The position numbers and the translations under genes are program-made. A DNA stretch of 64,000 nucleotides, taken from sequence record MF459647.1. One strand, 5' to 3'. How positions within the stretch are numbered: the stretch's first letter is position 1; every line of letters starts with the position of its first letter. The notes below the pieces were generated by a model. That model did not search any database. It saw only the letters and a list, made by a program, of their open reading frames with translations, and was not told where the DNA came from. This document shows, in pieces, positions 13,215 through 55,148 of this stretch.

Positions 13215-13274
13215 TGAGAGTGCTGTTCACTTTTCCGTGGCACTCTCATTTTTATTTTTTTGTTTATTTTTTTT
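13215..13274 (+). terminator. Intrinsic terminator with long U-tract
   Basis: TGAGAGTGC...GCACTCTCA stem (13215-13248) followed by ~25 nt that are mostly T. Confidence 0.8.
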
Positions 13275-27118: not shown

Positions 27119-27186
27119 GTCATAGCCCTGCATCTGCAGGGCTTAGCTTTCTCATCATTATTTTTTTTTTTCGTAAAGGAATTCCC

Positions 27187-45225: not shown

Positions 45226-46130
45226 GACCCTTCACCGCCTCCCAGTTGCAGTTCGCTGAGGATTTTATCCAGCTTCATCCTCACAGTGATATCATCAATC
45301 ACTTCGTCCAGGTACTTCGACGCGGCATCTTTGATTTGACTGTCATTGAGCTCACTGATTAAGAAGAGGCAGATGATATTAATGCCATACGCCAGCGGGT
45401 CACCGTTATCTTCTTCCAGGTAACGCTGTAGGTCACGCTTAAAGAAGTTCAGCAGGCTCTCTACGGCTCCGCCGAGTTGTCCCTGGTTGACGATGTGGTC
45501 CCACGTCAACGTGCCTTTAAACAGCGGCTTATTGGCGATAACACGGTCGATGATGTTTTGCGGTGGGTTCACTTCTTCATCGTTGGCCTTTAAACCATCC
45601 GACAGGGCCTTCAGCAAAACTTCACTAACGTCCTCTATGATATAAGTAAAGGGTTCTATGTCGAAACCTTCACCGTTCAGCTTTTCCATTACCATCAGGA
45701 AACGCTCTTTGGAATCGATGTCTCTCGAATCCAGAATGTTGCTCAACCCCAGGGTATCTTCATAACCCGGTAGCGTGTACACCATGTCAACCAGACGGAT
45801 GTACAACGGCAGGTGTTTGTTGTCGATGTATTCTGAAGAAATGGTAAAACCCATCTTCACCAGAATCTCCATTATATTGTCGACTATGAGCGACCAGATA
45901 ACTTGCTTTTTGGCTTGTGTCTCCAGTTGTTCATCAACAAACACCTCAGTGATTTGTGTGGGGAGTAAACTGTCCGGATACGTCAGCAAAATGTAGTTCA
46001 ACCCACGGGTAAGAATTTCATAATGCAGCTCCGGAATATACTCTTTGAATTCCGACCACATATCACCGACGTAGTGAATGGGCAAAAAGTCATCACTGTC
46101 GTCATATACTTCTTCTATTTCATTAATCAT
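45222..46130 (-). CDS. Conserved acidic protein co-transcribed with the vRNAP subunit
   Basis: 302 aa; 4-nt overlap with the start of the gp80-like gene. Confidence 0.7.
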   Translation of the reverse strand: MINEIEEVYDDSDDFLPIHYVGDMWSEFKEYIPELHYEILTRGLNYILLTYPDSLLPTQITEVFVDEQLETQAKKQVIWSLIVDNIMEILVKMGFTISSEYIDNKHLPLYIRLVDMVYTLPGYEDTLGLSNILDSRDIDSKERFLMVMEKLNGEGFDIEPFTYIIEDVSEVLLKALSDGLKANDEEVNPPQNIIDRVIANKPLFKGTLTWDHIVNQGQLGGAVESLLNFFKRDLQRYLEEDNGDPLAYGINIICLFLISELNDSQIKDAASKYLDEVIDDITVRMKLDKILSELQLGGGEGS

Positions 46131-46169
46131 ACGAATACCTATACCTTTCGTAAAAAGGAGCTACATAGC

Positions 46170-46928
46170 ATGACCACTAAAAACAACTTCAAAAAGCAGC
46201 GTAAAGCCGTACAAAAGCGCAAAGCGCGTGAACAGGCAAATGCTCAGGCGAACCACCGTGCACGCTCTCAGCCCAAGGGCAAGAAGAAGCACCCGAAGTA
46301 CTCTGAAGAGTTCATCCACCGTTATATTCAGCAGCATGGGTTTGCTCGTGCCGTGGTTGACCTCAAGCTGGAGCCGGAGAACACCGAGTTCACCAACAAA
46401 GACATCGCGCAGATGATTGCGGAAAGCATCCCGCCGATCACCCGTACGCACGCTGGCGTTGAAGTGCTTGCTCGTCTTGCGAAAGAAGGCGTGATTGAAC
46501 TGACCGAAGAAAACCACGCGCTGATCGTTGACTACGACAAAGTGGTCGTGAAGTTCAACGAAGACGTCGACGCCGTCATCATGCTGATGGAAGCGAAGAA
46601 AGAGCCGGAAGAGTTCATGGAGCTGGTCGCGCACCTGACCGACATGCTGATGGACCTCATGACCACGTACCGTGAGCCGGTTATCCAGCTGATTGAATCG
46701 CACAGCGAGAAGGTCGAAGAGTACGTTAAAGAGCACCGTGCTGAAGACCAGAGCATGGATGCCTACATGAGCCTGCTCCACACTCAGCGCGCCGCAGAGA
46801 TCTATCCTCTTTACCGTACCGGCCTGACTGTGACTGAACACGTCGACGCTGAGTTCGCTAAGTTTGACGAACAGCTTAATGAAGCCGCTGCATCCGAACA
46901 GCCGTCTGAAACTCAACCCACTGAATAA
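46170..46928 (+). CDS. Abundant protein with Lys/Arg-rich N-terminal arm
   Basis: ATG at 46170 with AAAAGGAG RBS; KKQRKAVQKRKAREQ...KGKKKHPK followed by an acidic helical body. Confidence 0.75.
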   Translation: MTTKNNFKKQRKAVQKRKAREQANAQANHRARSQPKGKKKHPKYSEEFIHRYIQQHGFARAVVDLKLEPENTEFTNKDIAQMIAESIPPITRTHAGVEVLARLAKEGVIELTEENHALIVDYDKVVVKFNEDVDAVIMLMEAKKEPEEFMELVAHLTDMLMDLMTTYREPVIQLIESHSEKVEEYVKEHRAEDQSMDAYMSLLHTQRAAEIYPLYRTGLTVTEHVDAEFAKFDEQLNEAAASEQPSETQPTE

Positions 46929-46943
46929 CGGAACTTATTGACC

Positions 46944-48758
46944 ATGGAACAACAACCTGGATTTGATCCTGATCTGACCAAAGATCTCCTGACTGAAGAA
47001 GTTGCTCATGCCCCGCGTCCTAATATCGGGCAAGCAGCTTCTGTACAACCAACTCAGTCTCAGCCGGTTATCCCGCAACCTCAGCCTGTGGTTCAAGAAG
47101 CCGCTGCCGCTGTTCCGGTTAAAGAACCCGTCGCGCCAGCGCGTGCTGACCAGATTCACACGGCTGAAAACACGCCGTTCAAAAACTTCATCCCGCTGTC
47201 CAGCATCTTTATTAAGAAGCTGACCGAGAAAGAGAAGGAGCAGGGTTATCTGACCGTGTTCCTGGGTAACCACAAAGACGTTATCGAAGCGAAGAACGAG
47301 CTGATTCAGAAATGGCTGGTCTTCCGTGCGTCTATCGGTATGCTGGCTGACGGTGAAATCACCGAGCAGGAAGCGGAAAGCGCCCGTGCTAACTGGACAG
47401 AATATCTGCAGGCGAACCACCCGAGCGAAGACCAGGAAGAGATGGAGAAGTATTGCCTTGAGCTGTACCAGTTCATGGACACCATCCAGGACGGGATTAA
47501 AATCCGCAGCCGTCTGATGCAGGAAGACCGCGTTACTAACCTCAGTGACCGTGGCAGCAACTTCATCACTGGCGACATCACCGGTAAACAGCCGAAGGCC
47601 GTACTGAAGAACACCGCGCTGTCTGAACAGATGCGTCGTTCTGCACTGAACGCCAATCAGGACCTGTATGAGTTCGACATTTTGCTACGTAACTCGTTTG
47701 CTGGTCTGTCTATTCGTCGTCCTAACCTGCTTTCCCTGGGTAGCCTGGTACAGGCCATCAGTAATCAGGTAAAAGGCTACGTGCGTCAAATCAACAACCC
47801 GTCCGTTACCCTGGCGTACATTGCCGGCATTCGTTGCATGTGGGACTACGTGTCTAAGCTGATCCTTACCTGTTCAGTAAAAGACACCCGTGACTTCCGC
47901 GAGCTAGCTGACTCTATCCTGTTAACGGATGTGGACCAGTTGGCTGTGGGTCTGTTGAACTCCATCTACACTCGTGGCGTGCATCTCGAACTGCGTTGCA
48001 TGAACCCGGGCTGTAACTGGTCTGATTTTGGCCTGGCTGATCCATCGAAGCTGTTGGACATTCGTAAGAAGTTCGAAACGCCAGAAGAAGCTGCGGTATT
48101 CGCCAACATCATCAACCGTCGCCAGAAGTATTCTCGCGAAGAGATGGAGAAGCTGCAGAAGGCCACCAACTACGGTATTGAAGAGACTCGTGTGTTCGGT
48201 ACTGACGGCCGTCATTACTTCCGTATCTCTCCGCCGACGCTGACCCAGGCATTCGAAACCCTGGAGTTCTTCACGGAAACCATCAACCCGCGTATTCAGG
48301 AACTGCGTGCCAACACGCTGGACCCGAAAGAGTTCGAAAACGAACTCACTGCGCTGTTGACCTCTATCTCCTCTGCGGAATACCTGCACTGGATTTCAGA
48401 GTACGTGGTACTGCCGGAGCCGGGTAGCGATACTGAACCAACCGTGTACGCACGTCCTAAGCACGACACGGCTGAGTTTAACCGTGGTCTGATGGCTATC
48501 CTGGAAGATGACCCTGAGCTGGGTAATGCCCTGGTGAAATTTGTGTACAACAAATCACCGTTCCTGTCTCGAGTCTTTACCGGGGTTGACCACCACGAGT
48601 GCCCGGCCTGTAAAGCACGTTCTGATGAGCACGACGGTCGTCAGTTAGGCTTCACGCCGATCAACGCCTTCATGAGTTTTTTTACCCTTACCCAGTTGAA
48701 GCTCATGGTGAGAACGGTCCAGGCCGACATAACAAACCGCGAAGCCCTCTCGGATTAA
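46944..48758 (+). CDS. Zn-finger protein, putative tail/baseplate assembly chaperone (0-frame product)
   Basis: CMNPGC and CPAC Cys pairs; Pro/Gln-rich N-terminus; contains the slippery T7 run 25 codons before its stop. Confidence 0.7.
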   Translation: MEQQPGFDPDLTKDLLTEEVAHAPRPNIGQAASVQPTQSQPVIPQPQPVVQEAAAAVPVKEPVAPARADQIHTAENTPFKNFIPLSSIFIKKLTEKEKEQGYLTVFLGNHKDVIEAKNELIQKWLVFRASIGMLADGEITEQEAESARANWTEYLQANHPSEDQEEMEKYCLELYQFMDTIQDGIKIRSRLMQEDRVTNLSDRGSNFITGDITGKQPKAVLKNTALSEQMRRSALNANQDLYEFDILLRNSFAGLSIRRPNLLSLGSLVQAISNQVKGYVRQINNPSVTLAYIAGIRCMWDYVSKLILTCSVKDTRDFRELADSILLTDVDQLAVGLLNSIYTRGVHLELRCMNPGCNWSDFGLADPSKLLDIRKKFETPEEAAVFANIINRRQKYSREEMEKLQKATNYGIEETRVFGTDGRHYFRISPPTLTQAFETLEFFTETINPRIQELRANTLDPKEFENELTALLTSISSAEYLHWISEYVVLPEPGSDTEPTVYARPKHDTAEFNRGLMAILEDDPELGNALVKFVYNKSPFLSRVFTGVDHHECPACKARSDEHDGRQLGFTPINAFMSFFTLTQLKLMVRTVQADITNREALSD

Positions 48759-49207
48759 TCACCGAGCCTTACTTCTCGGCTGAGTACCTTCGGGTCTCTG
48801 GTAACCTGCTTGGGAAAGATATCTCGAACATCTCTCCTGAGCAGCTCCAACGTTATGAAGAGATGCTGTACGACTTCAACATGGGGTATTACCGAACGGA
48901 GACCATGACTCCGTTTTCGTCGGTGGCGTACATCAAAGAGGAAAACGAATTCTATCATCCTTTATCGTTTGAGGAGACTGGCAAGCGCTATGGGTTTAAC
49001 AAACTGCACGACGTTATTCCCATGGAGACGTACCTGAAGCTTCCGGCCTTTATGATAGACGATTTCCTTAACGGCATCACGAAAGGCAAAGAGCAACGGT
49101 TCAAGTTAGATAAGGATAAAGCACCGGCTGACGGTGACGCACCTAATGCTGAAATGCGAAACGTTGCTCTCCAACTCGAAAGTATCCTGAAGACTATGAA
49201 CAAGTAA
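48677..49207 (+). CDS. -1 frame extension of 46944-48758 (putative frameshift product, lambda G/GT-like)
   Basis: Frame is open from the T-TTT-TTT heptamer for 62 codons with no ATG/GTG/TTG before the ATG at 48863, which has no proper RBS; the upstream part reads as protein (LITEPYFSAEYLRVSGNLLGKDISNISPEQLQRYEE). Confidence 0.65.
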   Translation, partial: FFYPYPVEAHGENGPGRHNKPRSPLGLITEPYFSAEYLRVSGNLLGKDISNISPEQLQRYEEMLYDFNMGYYRTETMTPFSSVAYIKEENEFYHPLSFEETGKRYGFNKLHDVIPMETYLKLPAFMIDDFLNGITKGKEQRFKLDKDKAPADGDAPNAEMRNVALQLESILKTMNK

Positions 49208-49294
49208 TCTTCCTGTATCTCCTCCTCTGGCTACGGCTGGGGGAGGGATATTTTATGCATGCCTCCTTATTCTTTATTTATGAAAGGTGAAATT

Positions 49295-49915
49295 ATGGGT
49301 CAGCCTACCAAATCCGCTCCACAGATTGAAGAAGTGAAAGATCTTGCTTCTGAGAAAGAACCAGTCCTGGTACTGGATGAAGCACCTCCGGCTGCGCCGG
49401 TAAAAAGCACGGGTGCTGCCAACATCAAACTGAAAGATGTTGAGACCGTGAAGATTGGCGACCAGATTAGCGCCAAAGGGGATTTCGTCAGTGAACTGAT
49501 GATTACCCGTATCAACCAGCACATGGAATACCTGCGCGGCGAGAAAGGCTTCGCTACTGACGATGTGCGTTTCCGTGAAATGATCACCTTCATGGAAACC
49601 ATCGGCAACTCCACCACGCTGGGTATTGACCAGTACTGCGTGGTAACTGACTTCTTGATGAAGACCATCCGCGATAACCTGGATGACTTCAAAGAAGGTC
49701 GTGCCTTCCGCTTTATGCGTGGTCTGAGCCGTCACTATTCTGACTCTGCGATTGCAGCCTATCAGAACTACATGACCATGCTGATCCGTCTGGCTGGTGC
49801 GTACGCTGACCGCAAGCGCGTCTTTAAGAAGATGGACCTGGACTACATCACCGTAGGGATGCCGGTTGCTGCACGCAACAACATCAACACCTACATCCGT
49901 CGTCTGTGCGAATAA
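49295..49915 (+). CDS. Conserved hypothetical protein
   Basis: ATG at 49295 with AAAGGTG RBS; 206 aa. Confidence 0.72.
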   Translation: MGQPTKSAPQIEEVKDLASEKEPVLVLDEAPPAAPVKSTGAANIKLKDVETVKIGDQISAKGDFVSELMITRINQHMEYLRGEKGFATDDVRFREMITFMETIGNSTTLGIDQYCVVTDFLMKTIRDNLDDFKEGRAFRFMRGLSRHYSDSAIAAYQNYMTMLIRLAGAYADRKRVFKKMDLDYITVGMPVAARNNINTYIRRLCE

Positions 49916-53617: not shown

Positions 53618-55148
53618 TACGCCGGTTTCTTCAATGACCCAAATCAACAAAGGGAACACCACCGCTTACCTTCCGGGTGACGATGATGATACCCAGCGTG
53701 TTGATCTGGATGAGTACTACGAAGAATGCGAGCAGACTCACGTCACAAAGATGGTTACCGGTGCTGAAGCGTTTTTCAGTAAAGGTGTGCTGTCGAAATC
53801 CCTGGCGCGTCTCAGCGGTCTTTCCGGGTGCGAAAATTACGACCCTATTCCGTCCCGTATGAATGCACGACTGGGCGGGGAAGGGTTTGTTAGCGTTATC
53901 GTGGATAGCTTTAAGAAGTTCATTGAGAACATCATTAAGTACGTCAAGATGGCGGTGAACTGGATTGTGGATTTGGTGAAAACCCTGCTCGGTTATAAAA
54001 AGACCAAGCGTCAGGTTGAACAAGCCACGGCGGAAATGGAAAACATCAAGAAGGAGTTCAAGGAACTGCTGAAAGGACTGGGCTTCCCGTCTGACAAGTG
54101 GGACCTGGACAAATTCATTGCGGACCCTGAAGTGTCGTTTGACCGTATGGGTGCTTTCCATATCCTGCGCAACAAGTTCATGGATGATGCAGAAGCCATC
54201 AAACGCCTGGGTGAATCTCTGCCTACGTTTGTAACGGCCGTTGAGTTTATGAACCAGTCCAGCAAAAACGTCAAGCGGGCCAGCGATAACTTCCACAAAG
54301 TGATTCACAATGTGGCGGGTGAAGTCCGTAAGGGTAAAACCGATGGACGTGCTGAGCTCGAGCTGATTAAGCAGGCCGGTCATGAAATCAAGTTAGCCAC
54401 TAACTTCGAAGGCATTACCACCAAGCTGAGCGAACTGTACAACGCTCTGTACACCAACACTGACGGCAAGGTTATCAAAGAGAACAAGTTCTCGAACGAA
54501 GCATTGCAGGAAGGGTACATGGAAATCCGTGCGCAGCTGCAACAGCTGATTACCACGTCTTCTGTATCCATCCAGTCAGTGCCGGACCGTCAGACGTTAC
54601 TCAGCAGCATCGCCGATGCATCAGCCCGTTACGTTGCGCTGAAAGACACGGACATCGATCTGTCGCACATCGACTTCAAACAGTACGGTGACCTCATTAA
54701 CAAACAGGATGCGGAAATCATTCGTGAGATTGATAAGCTGACCGGTGTTAATGGTGCGTTGATTTCTGCCTACAGTAATACGGCGAAGATGGTGCGTGAC
54801 TATACCCAGTTCTGTCACAGCATCATCAATGTCCTGAACCAGACCAACAAACAGTTGGAAAACCTCTGGCTCTGGCATAGCCGTGCGCAGCAGATGATCT
54901 TCTTCTACGTGCTGAAAGACTTCGAAGGCATTGTTGAGCTGAACAAGCAATATATCGCCATGGGTATGAACCCGTACGCTAACGGTGAAGGCATTCCTCG
55001 CGTGGATGGGTTCATTAAGTATGATGACCGGGTAACGATGTTTGAAAAGATTGCGGGTACTGCCAACGATCTGCTCGAAGAGAACATCAACGGCATCAAA
55101 GACAGCATCCGTAACTTAAGCCGTTCTTTGGGGTGGACACCACGATGA
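53610..55148 (+). CDS. Processed inner-head protein
   Basis: Acidic propeptide with GAE, GCE and GGE motifs followed by GFVSVIVDSFKKFIENIIKYVK, typical of phiKZ-type head paralog families. Confidence 0.72.
   Translation: MSDTPVSSMTQINKGNTTAYLPGDDDDTQRVDLDEYYEECEQTHVTKMVTGAEAFFSKGVLSKSLARLSGLSGCENYDPIPSRMNARLGGEGFVSVIVDSFKKFIENIIKYVKMAVNWIVDLVKTLLGYKKTKRQVEQATAEMENIKKEFKELLKGLGFPSDKWDLDKFIADPEVSFDRMGAFHILRNKFMDDAEAIKRLGESLPTFVTAVEFMNQSSKNVKRASDNFHKVIHNVAGEVRKGKTDGRAELELIKQAGHEIKLATNFEGITTKLSELYNALYTNTDGKVIKENKFSNEALQEGYMEIRAQLQQLITTSSVSIQSVPDRQTLLSSIADASARYVALKDTDIDLSHIDFKQYGDLINKQDAEIIREIDKLTGVNGALISAYSNTAKMVRDYTQFCHSIINVLNQTNKQLENLWLWHSRAQQMIFFYVLKDFEGIVELNKQYIAMGMNPYANGEGIPRVDGFIKYDDRVTMFEKIAGTANDLLEENINGIKDSIRNLSRSLGWTPR

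Follow-up and report, generated by a model that had tools for sequence, protein, structure and literature searches.

The −1 frameshift in dnaX relies on strong flanking stimulators. It allows a single gene to give two isoforms (mentioned in PMC7412058), and in phage lambda the gpG and gpGT products occur at a molar ratio of 30:1, with neither of them in the virion according to a 2016 recoding review (PMC5009743). In Escherichia coli, heptamers of the form H_HH.U_UU.Y are among the most efficient −1 motifs; U_UU.U_UU.C and U_UU.U_UU.U need no stimulator to shift at >0.1%, above background; among tetramers, only A_AA.G is better than U_UU.C and U_UU.U; and U_UU.U_UU.C is found among the frameshift sites of insertion sequence (IS) elements (Sharma et al., PMC4066793). 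Here we describe a T_TTT_TTT heptamer close to the 3′ end of gp53 (JOAD_53, referred to as gene 1) in Erwinia phage vB_EamM_Joad, identified in a 64,000-nucleotide (nt) stretch of record MF459647.1 (the window; positions follow the record coordinates, the two being 100% identical over 46900–49300). It is very likely that the T-run in gp53 is recoded in one way or another, and comparison of related loci points to what is probably an old, family-wide programmed −1 ribosomal frameshift of the U_UUU_UUY class, which would yield a short and a C-terminally extended isoform. The signal is of the canonical −1 frameshift type, the gene family carrying it is new in this respect, and its breadth is unusually wide. 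The main features of the locus are the following (product lengths in amino acids, aa):

46944–48758, + strand: gene 1, JOAD_53 (gp53), with a 0-frame product of 604 aa; labelled ‘putative ZipA-like cell division protein’ in GenBank.
48677–48683, + strand: slippery heptamer T_TTT_TTT, phased as X_XXY_YYZ; the gene is taken to be intact and the heptamer to be its recoding signal.
48683–49207, + strand: −1 frame coding segment, 174 codons plus stop, beginning with the last base of the heptamer.
48684–48758, + strand: dual-coded overlap; the 0 frame holds the final 24 codons and stop of gene 1, and the −1 frame holds the first part of the extension.
48863–49207, + strand: JOAD_54 (gp54), contained in the −1 frame segment; annotated in GenBank as a separate, hypothetical gene.

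In the 0 frame the site reads ATG AGT TTT TTT ACC, with the first of the seven T's in the third codon position, and the frame ends 24 codons past the heptamer. In the −1 frame, no stop interrupts the stretch that begins 54 nt upstream of the last T and ends with the stop at 49205–49207. This frame contains no ATG, GTG or TTG for 60 codons past the site; the first such codon is the annotated gp54 ATG at 48863, which is touched by a purine-rich GAAGAG with zero spacing. With 580 residues up to the site and 174 beyond it, the predicted long product comprises ~754 aa. A preliminary description of the window, made from its letters without database searches, had proposed a programmed −1 frameshift at this site. 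Its reading of the heptamer phase, of the −1 frame open to 49207, of a gp54 ATG lacking a spaced ribosome-binding site and of products of ~604 and ~754 aa agrees with the sequence in each respect, and its count of 62 start-less −1 codons was essentially right. The same site is present in phage RisingSun, which is 97.4% identical to Joad over the 2.4 kb compared and 99% identical around the site.

According to the proposed mechanism, most ribosomes would stay in the 0 frame, terminate after 24 more codons and so make the 604-aa protein, and a fraction would slip back one base at the heptamer with re-pairing of both Phe tRNAs. The slipped ribosomes would translate 174 more codons in the −1 frame to give the ~754-aa isoform, in which the last helix of the short form would be replaced by a Pro-x-Pro linker and an extension domain of ~110 residues, the part annotated as gp54. 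Both isoforms would share a zinc-type four-Cys protein of novel fold, and a fixed ratio between them is presumably what selection maintains.

The site was compared in 60 distinct homologous loci, collected from GenBank phages, metagenome contigs reached through protein-search matches, IMG/VR and, via phiKZ, the phiKZ-type clade. These include EL, FishSpeaker, Miami, Vibrio and Aeromonas phages, phiKZ, PhiPA3, 201phi2-1, RAY, PCH45, SPN3US, one Bacillus phage and metagenomes. The 0-frame product and the −1 piece were searched separately throughout; codon usage at the site was counted in 48 loci, and the −1 frame protein alignment comprises 44. Heptamer positions 2–6 are T in 60/60 loci and position 1 is T in 57/60, with position 7 being T in 40, C in 19 and A in one. 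In Bacillus phage AgentSmith (2574–2580) the site reads T_TTT_TTA and encodes Phe-Leu instead of Phe-Phe; despite this change in the protein, the slippery nucleotide pattern is kept in this phage of a Gram-positive host. Phe in gene 1 is encoded to 70% by TTC and to 30% by TTT, whereas the first Phe codon at the site is TTT in 48/48 loci. Likewise, the codon preceding the site ends in T in 57/60 loci against a background third-position T of 27%, and encodes eight amino acids over the 60 loci (AGT, AAT, GCT, GGT, ACT, GTT, CTT and TAT). As judged from these codon choices, the constraint on the heptamer is synonymous and goes beyond the requirement of the protein. The conserved, phased pattern N_UUU_UUY would make tandem re-pairing of Phe tRNAs in the −1 frame possible. 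Past the site the 0 frame stops after 8–44 codons in the 60 loci, and after 8–27 in all but one of them. In this one, Serratia phage PCH45 (2239–2380), it runs for 44 codons past the heptamer, which would give the short isoform a far longer tail of its own.

The −1 frame is open for 149–185 codons past the site in all loci but L036, in which it reaches the contig end after 98, and it opens 12–144 nt before the site. The first possible −1 start codon is located at variable, non-homologous places 4–61 codons downstream, and no start codon conserved across the loci was found in this frame. The signal, its phase, the two open frames and their conservation are all seen in the sequences. Immediately after the site, the pattern xxC Cxx is found at two successive codon pairs in 48/48 loci, which results in invariant −1 frame Pro at +2 and +4 (44/44 in the protein alignment), and the corresponding 0-frame residues vary (Thr, Asp, Ile or Val, then Leu, His, Gln or Arg). 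The −1 frame between the 0-frame stop and the annotated ATG of Joad is alignable across the clade, and the extension domains of the Joad-type and the phiKZ-type clade are homologues of each other (hhalign 94.9%, E = 4.8e-8). The fraction of identical codons among pairs encoding the same amino acid is 0.50 over the whole gene and reaches 0.80 and 0.71 in the first windows at the site; it drops halfway through the overlap, where the −1 frame encodes a variable linker of low complexity, and climbs again near the 0-frame stop. A block of ~10 nt (~48740–48752), situated ~60 nt past the heptamer and before the 0-frame stop, is nearly invariant in the T7 clade (23 loci), and dual coding explains at least part of this invariance.

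When the 174-aa −1 piece alone was used in tblastn, it aligned from residue 1–2 to distant phages with 23–39% identity, among them FishSpeaker, EL, Miami, N1M2 and CF8, and each match lies in the −1 frame relative to the gene-1 homologue, whose 3′ end it overlaps. In phiKZ (NC_004629; 71442–71940, minus strand) the same seven T's are found in the same phase. Here the −1 frame crosses an unannotated 218-nt gap between PHIKZ077 and PHIKZ076.4 and continues into PHIKZ076.4, which, from this arrangement, seems to be the last part of the extension and not a separate gene. In RAY (locus 2232–2780) the annotated start of gp266 lies upstream of the heptamer and gp266 overlaps gp267 by 136 nt in the −1 frame, an annotation that shows annotators coping with a missing start codon. 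Wherever a downstream gene is annotated or called in the 60 loci, it is in the −1 frame.

The gene-1 family is present in at least 226 phage records and in 633 protein clusters, the latter being the relatives that HMMER, run against 1.84 billion cluster representatives, retrieved at E ≤ 1e-3. Among the best 150 of the 633 representatives, none continues more than ~45 residues past the profile end. Similarly, a word-indexed search revealed no in-frame fusion among 14 homologues, which are 538–621 aa in length, none near 750 aa. In the data examined, neither a lineage with an in-frame fusion nor one with clean separation and a conserved start was seen, as would be anticipated if the phages require both isoforms. 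The comparison suggested in the preliminary description, a search of the relatives for a slippery site together with an open and conserved −1 frame, thus found both in 60 loci. The proposal of a short product and a fusion that annotation has split is thereby supported, the heptamer being present in 60/60 and the −1 frame being open and conserved as protein.

The arrangement is also rare within the window, where only five T-runs of at least seven occur. Its long stop-to-stop open reading frames (ORFs) hold 57 in-phase X_XXY_YYZ heptamers, and a −1 ORF of at least 100 codons follows only 2/57. The second of these, T_TTG_GGG at 55127–55133, is located four codons ahead of a stop and is followed by a 227-codon −1 ORF; it was rejected, since this ORF has a GTG start at 55133 and the arrangement looks like a usual overlap of two genes. 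Longer T-runs lie elsewhere in the window, with T11 at 27161 and T8 at 13267.

Several observations weigh against a programmed ribosomal shift. RNA structure in the 75 nt after the site shows a mean minimum free energy (MFE) z-score of ~0 in 48 loci, RNAalifold returned 0 conserved pairs in 23 loci, Rfam gave no match at the site, and no upstream Shine–Dalgarno-like element was seen on reading the sequences. No trans-frame protein was observed, and lysate proteomics of RisingSun picked up neither gp53 nor gp54 (PMC6034870). Three loci deviate at position 1, with G in L018 and PhiPA3 and C in L040, and thus carry only six T's, the first of them at codon position 1; such sites may shift less efficiently, or the deviation may stem from the sequencing. 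Loci L022–L058 were retrieved by a peptide pattern containing Phe-Phe, and in this part of the set the Phe-Phe residues are consequently ascertained, but the codon choice and the flanks are not. Finally, a homopolymer of at least six T's is present in 60/60 loci, and these phages transcribe with unusual multisubunit RNA polymerases of their own. The weak stem pointed out in the preliminary description does appear in the MFE fold of Joad; however, with z = −0.34 it is not significant, nor is it a conserved stimulator. As no conserved stimulator was found, the frameshift efficiency may be low, or the stimulator may be of an unrecognised kind. By analogy with lambda G/GT, a modest, constitutive efficiency would be expected.

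The homopolymer and the phage polymerases speak for transcriptional slippage, the alternative named in the preliminary description, in which phage or host RNA polymerase would stutter on the T6–T7 run and mRNAs of variant run length would give the long isoform. The failure to find an RNA stimulator for a ribosomal shift is in line with such a mechanism, and genes contain fewer UUUUUUU runs than expected, a sequence described as prone to slippage (PMC4066793). Still, we regard slippage as unlikely, since the conserved unit is the phased N_TTT_TTY and not the run length. The run consists of six T's in 23 loci (19 with T6 followed by C, three with T6 after G or C and one with T6 followed by A) and of seven in 37; it is never longer, and no lineage has lengthened it. 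Moreover, it is always in the sole phase that permits tandem tRNA re-pairing. Documented bacterial transcriptional slippage sites are usually runs of 8–9 or more. We infer that the ribosome, rather than RNA polymerase, is slipping, and the efficiency and the function are inferred as well.

A more elaborate version of the ribosomal shift would be an ancient regulated switch, driven by a conserved nascent peptide just upstream or by ribosome-binding phage factors and not by RNA structure. The isoform ratio would then change in infection and control an assembly step of the phiKZ-like jumbo phages. We consider a switch of this kind improbable.

That there is no recoding at all appears very improbable. 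In that case the downstream gene (gene 2) would give a free protein only, by independent or coupled initiation near the gene-1 stop, and the upstream conservation would be a by-product of constraint on gene 1. In the four closest metagenomic relatives an ATG (L012, L013 and L015) or GTG (L014) does overlap the gene-1 stop, and five lineages (201phi2-1, RSF1, Asesino, YongXC32 and PCH45) have an annotated gene-2 start within ~20 nt of it. However, at the corresponding place (window 48756–48760) Joad and RisingSun carry ATC, and L016 carries ATT. Joad, EL, N1M2, pEt-SU and others are start-less for 49–61 codons and would lose conserved residues if translation began only at the first available start. 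In many loci the −1 frame opens just 12–18 nt before the heptamer, and a start codon is absent there. Free initiation would also leave unexplained the exclusive use of TTT in a TTC-preferring gene and the T-ending codon in front of it, as well as the invariant −1 frame Pro-x-Pro amid varying 0-frame residues. The preliminary description had raised the case of relatives combining a start near the gene-1 stop with loss of the slippery site; starts of this kind occur in the four relatives, but the heptamer is kept in 60/60 loci. Some lineages, those whose start codon lies on the gene-1 stop or shortly behind it, may make free gene-2 protein in addition to the frameshift product; in Joad, judging by the codons present, it is probably not made.

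Homopolymers are classic sites of sequencing error, but a wrong run length in the assembly of a single ORF, or a recent pseudogene, is effectively refuted by the distribution of the arrangement, which recurs in 60 distinct, separately deposited loci (phiKZ, EL and metagenomes among them; 23 with only six T's), has no in-frame version among the best 150 of 633 cluster representatives and is under purifying selection in both frames.

The protein that would carry the extension, gp53, belongs to the phiKZ gp77/EL gp47 family (phrog_4585, E = 3e-166, covering 17–600 of 604), phiKZ gp77 itself being a distant homologue (hhalign 97.4%, E = 1.2e-11, 351 columns). All members fall into phrog_4585 or phrog_8054, both labelled as of unknown function, and GenBank notes already tie PhiPA3 gp074, 201phi2-1 gp136, phiKZ gp077 and EL gp47 to one another. 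The four cysteines quoted in the preliminary description are conserved in 49 sequences, with C357, C553 and C556 invariant and C352 conserved to at least 90%. Their arrangement in two distant pairs suggests a structural metal site:

47997–48014, + strand: cysteine pair 1 (C352, C357) of the putative four-Cys metal site; conservation in 49 sequences, with presumed metal binding.
48600–48611, + strand: cysteine pair 2 (C553, C556), a CxxC motif; invariant in 49 sequences, the pair also aligning in phiKZ gp77.

The AlphaFold2 (AF2) model of gp53 is confident, with a predicted local distance difference test (pLDDT) score of 82 and a predicted template modelling (pTM) score of 0.80, and that of the −1 piece is poor (pLDDT 51); the AF2 predictions were made from shallower alignments (A6, A7). 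Residues 1–60 of gp53 (46944–47123) are rich in Pro, Gln, Ala and Val and predicted to be disordered (pLDDT < 50), and this N-terminus is probably the source of the ‘ZipA-like’ product name. No Pfam ZipA match was obtained at E ≤ 0.1, and the name is therefore unsupported. Likewise, sequence searches of Pfam and the PDB returned nothing for either piece (Pfam E ≤ 0.1; PDB none below E = 0.25). The gp53 model ends in a helix spanning 575–603, so that a shift at residue 580 would swap this C-terminal helix for the Pro-x-Pro linker and extension.

Comparison of the gp53 model with PDB folds gave no significant match (best E = 0.34), and the modelled fold appears to be novel. In BFVD the model matches jumbo-phage homologues strongly, whereas its resemblance to proteins annotated as T4-like baseplate hub assembly proteins is weak (E = 5e-3 to 2e-2, probability 0.97–1.0, template modelling (TM) score 0.42–0.49, targets of 250–285 aa). 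No sequence-profile link to baseplate hub assembly proteins (Pfam, PHROGs) and no PDB structure match to them was found. Homologues carry ‘baseplate’ product names in three GenBank records, including that of a Bacillus phage. In the phiKZ and 201phi2-1 records the homologues are without a virion-protein flag, and their neighbours are flagged. From the weak hub fold likeness, the ‘baseplate’ names, the failure to detect it in the lysate proteome and the lack of virion flags, one might guess that gp53 is a non-virion assembly factor, perhaps related to baseplate-hub assembly proteins; the guess is reasonable yet weak, and we hold it to be doubtful. The nuclear import factor PicA/Imp1 (phiKZ gp69), suspected from the synteny with an RNA polymerase gene, was rejected at an hhalign probability of 0.4%, and hhalign was also negative for phiKZ gp68 and gp70 as counterparts of gp53.

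In the Joad genome, gp53 is located between the gene for a virion RNA-polymerase (beta-like) subunit and the DNA polymerase gene, the other neighbours being hypothetical. Two further features flank the locus:

46074–46928, + strand: gp52 (JOAD_52), the upstream neighbour, in the position of phiKZ gp78; its synteny with gene 1 is kept.
49220–49247, + strand: terminator-like hairpin of 12 bp, GC-rich and with a T-rich tail, directly 3′ of the −1 ORF stop; from a consensus scan only.

GenBank notes tie PhiPA3 075 to phiKZ gp078, and a similar hairpin follows PHIKZ076.4 in phiKZ. With the terminator-like hairpin directly after the −1 ORF, gene 1 and its extension seem, from the layout, to end one transcription unit.

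In current records the family is annotated as hypothetical, the small downstream ORFs are annotated separately with non-homologous starts, and no GenBank record of the family carries a frameshift mark. A full-text literature search, with most subscription papers outside its reach, found no published description of the site; its matches to ‘gp77’ concern genes of other phages. The accessible parts of the 2016 recoding review make no mention of phiKZ or jumbo phages (PMC5009743). If the programmed −1 shift is true, it would be the first recoding event found described, within the literature searched, for the nucleus-forming and allied jumbo phages. The annotation of the family genomes (phiKZ, PhiPA3, 201phi2-1, EL, RAY, PCH45 and SPN3US) would change, the small downstream ORF being mostly the tail of the long isoform. 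The spread from phages of Gram-negative hosts to one Bacillus phage, with the two frames never fused or separated, argues that both isoforms and their ratio are needed. The site would further provide a concrete handle on a core protein of novel fold, and a natural example of a U_UUU_UUY site apparently working without a recognisable stimulator.

Among the described systems, lambda gpG/gpGT was the model invoked in the preliminary description, and the likeness stands for topology. In lambda, shifting to −1 shortly before the gene ends gives short and C-terminally extended products with a shared N-terminus, and the same is read for gp53 from sequence alone. Similarly, the lambda products are not in the virion, as stated in the review cited above, the Joad-type products are undetected in the RisingSun lysate proteome, and no strong RNA stimulator is evident. 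The likeness does not, however, extend to homology, gene size or genomic position. Gene 1 encodes 604 aa versus roughly 100–150, and it is not situated between tail tube and tape measure genes but flanked by RNA-polymerase subunit and DNA polymerase genes. No tail-chaperone family was matched in Pfam or PHROGs, and the sole chaperone in BFVD had E = 2.1. As gene size, position and family differ, lambda G/GT serves as an analogy of topology only.

The orfA–orfB sites of IS elements, of the H_HH.U_UU.Y type, share the motif class and, given the proposed shift, the formation of a fusion protein. Unlike these, gp53 is not part of a mobile element, no pseudoknot or hairpin was found at its site, and the signal spans Pseudomonas to Bacillus phages. 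With dnaX (tau/gamma) the locus would have in common that a −1 shift gives two isoforms of one protein, whose ratio matters; however, the shift truncates in dnaX and would extend in gp53, where no stimulators were seen. The T4-like baseplate hub assembly proteins (gp51-type) resemble the gp53 model weakly in fold in BFVD, but these targets are half the size of gp53, and to our knowledge no frameshift is known in such hub genes. Finally, phiKZ gp77, EL gp47, PhiPA3 gp074 and 201phi2-1 gp136 are members of the family of gp53 itself, and nothing sets gp53 apart from them.

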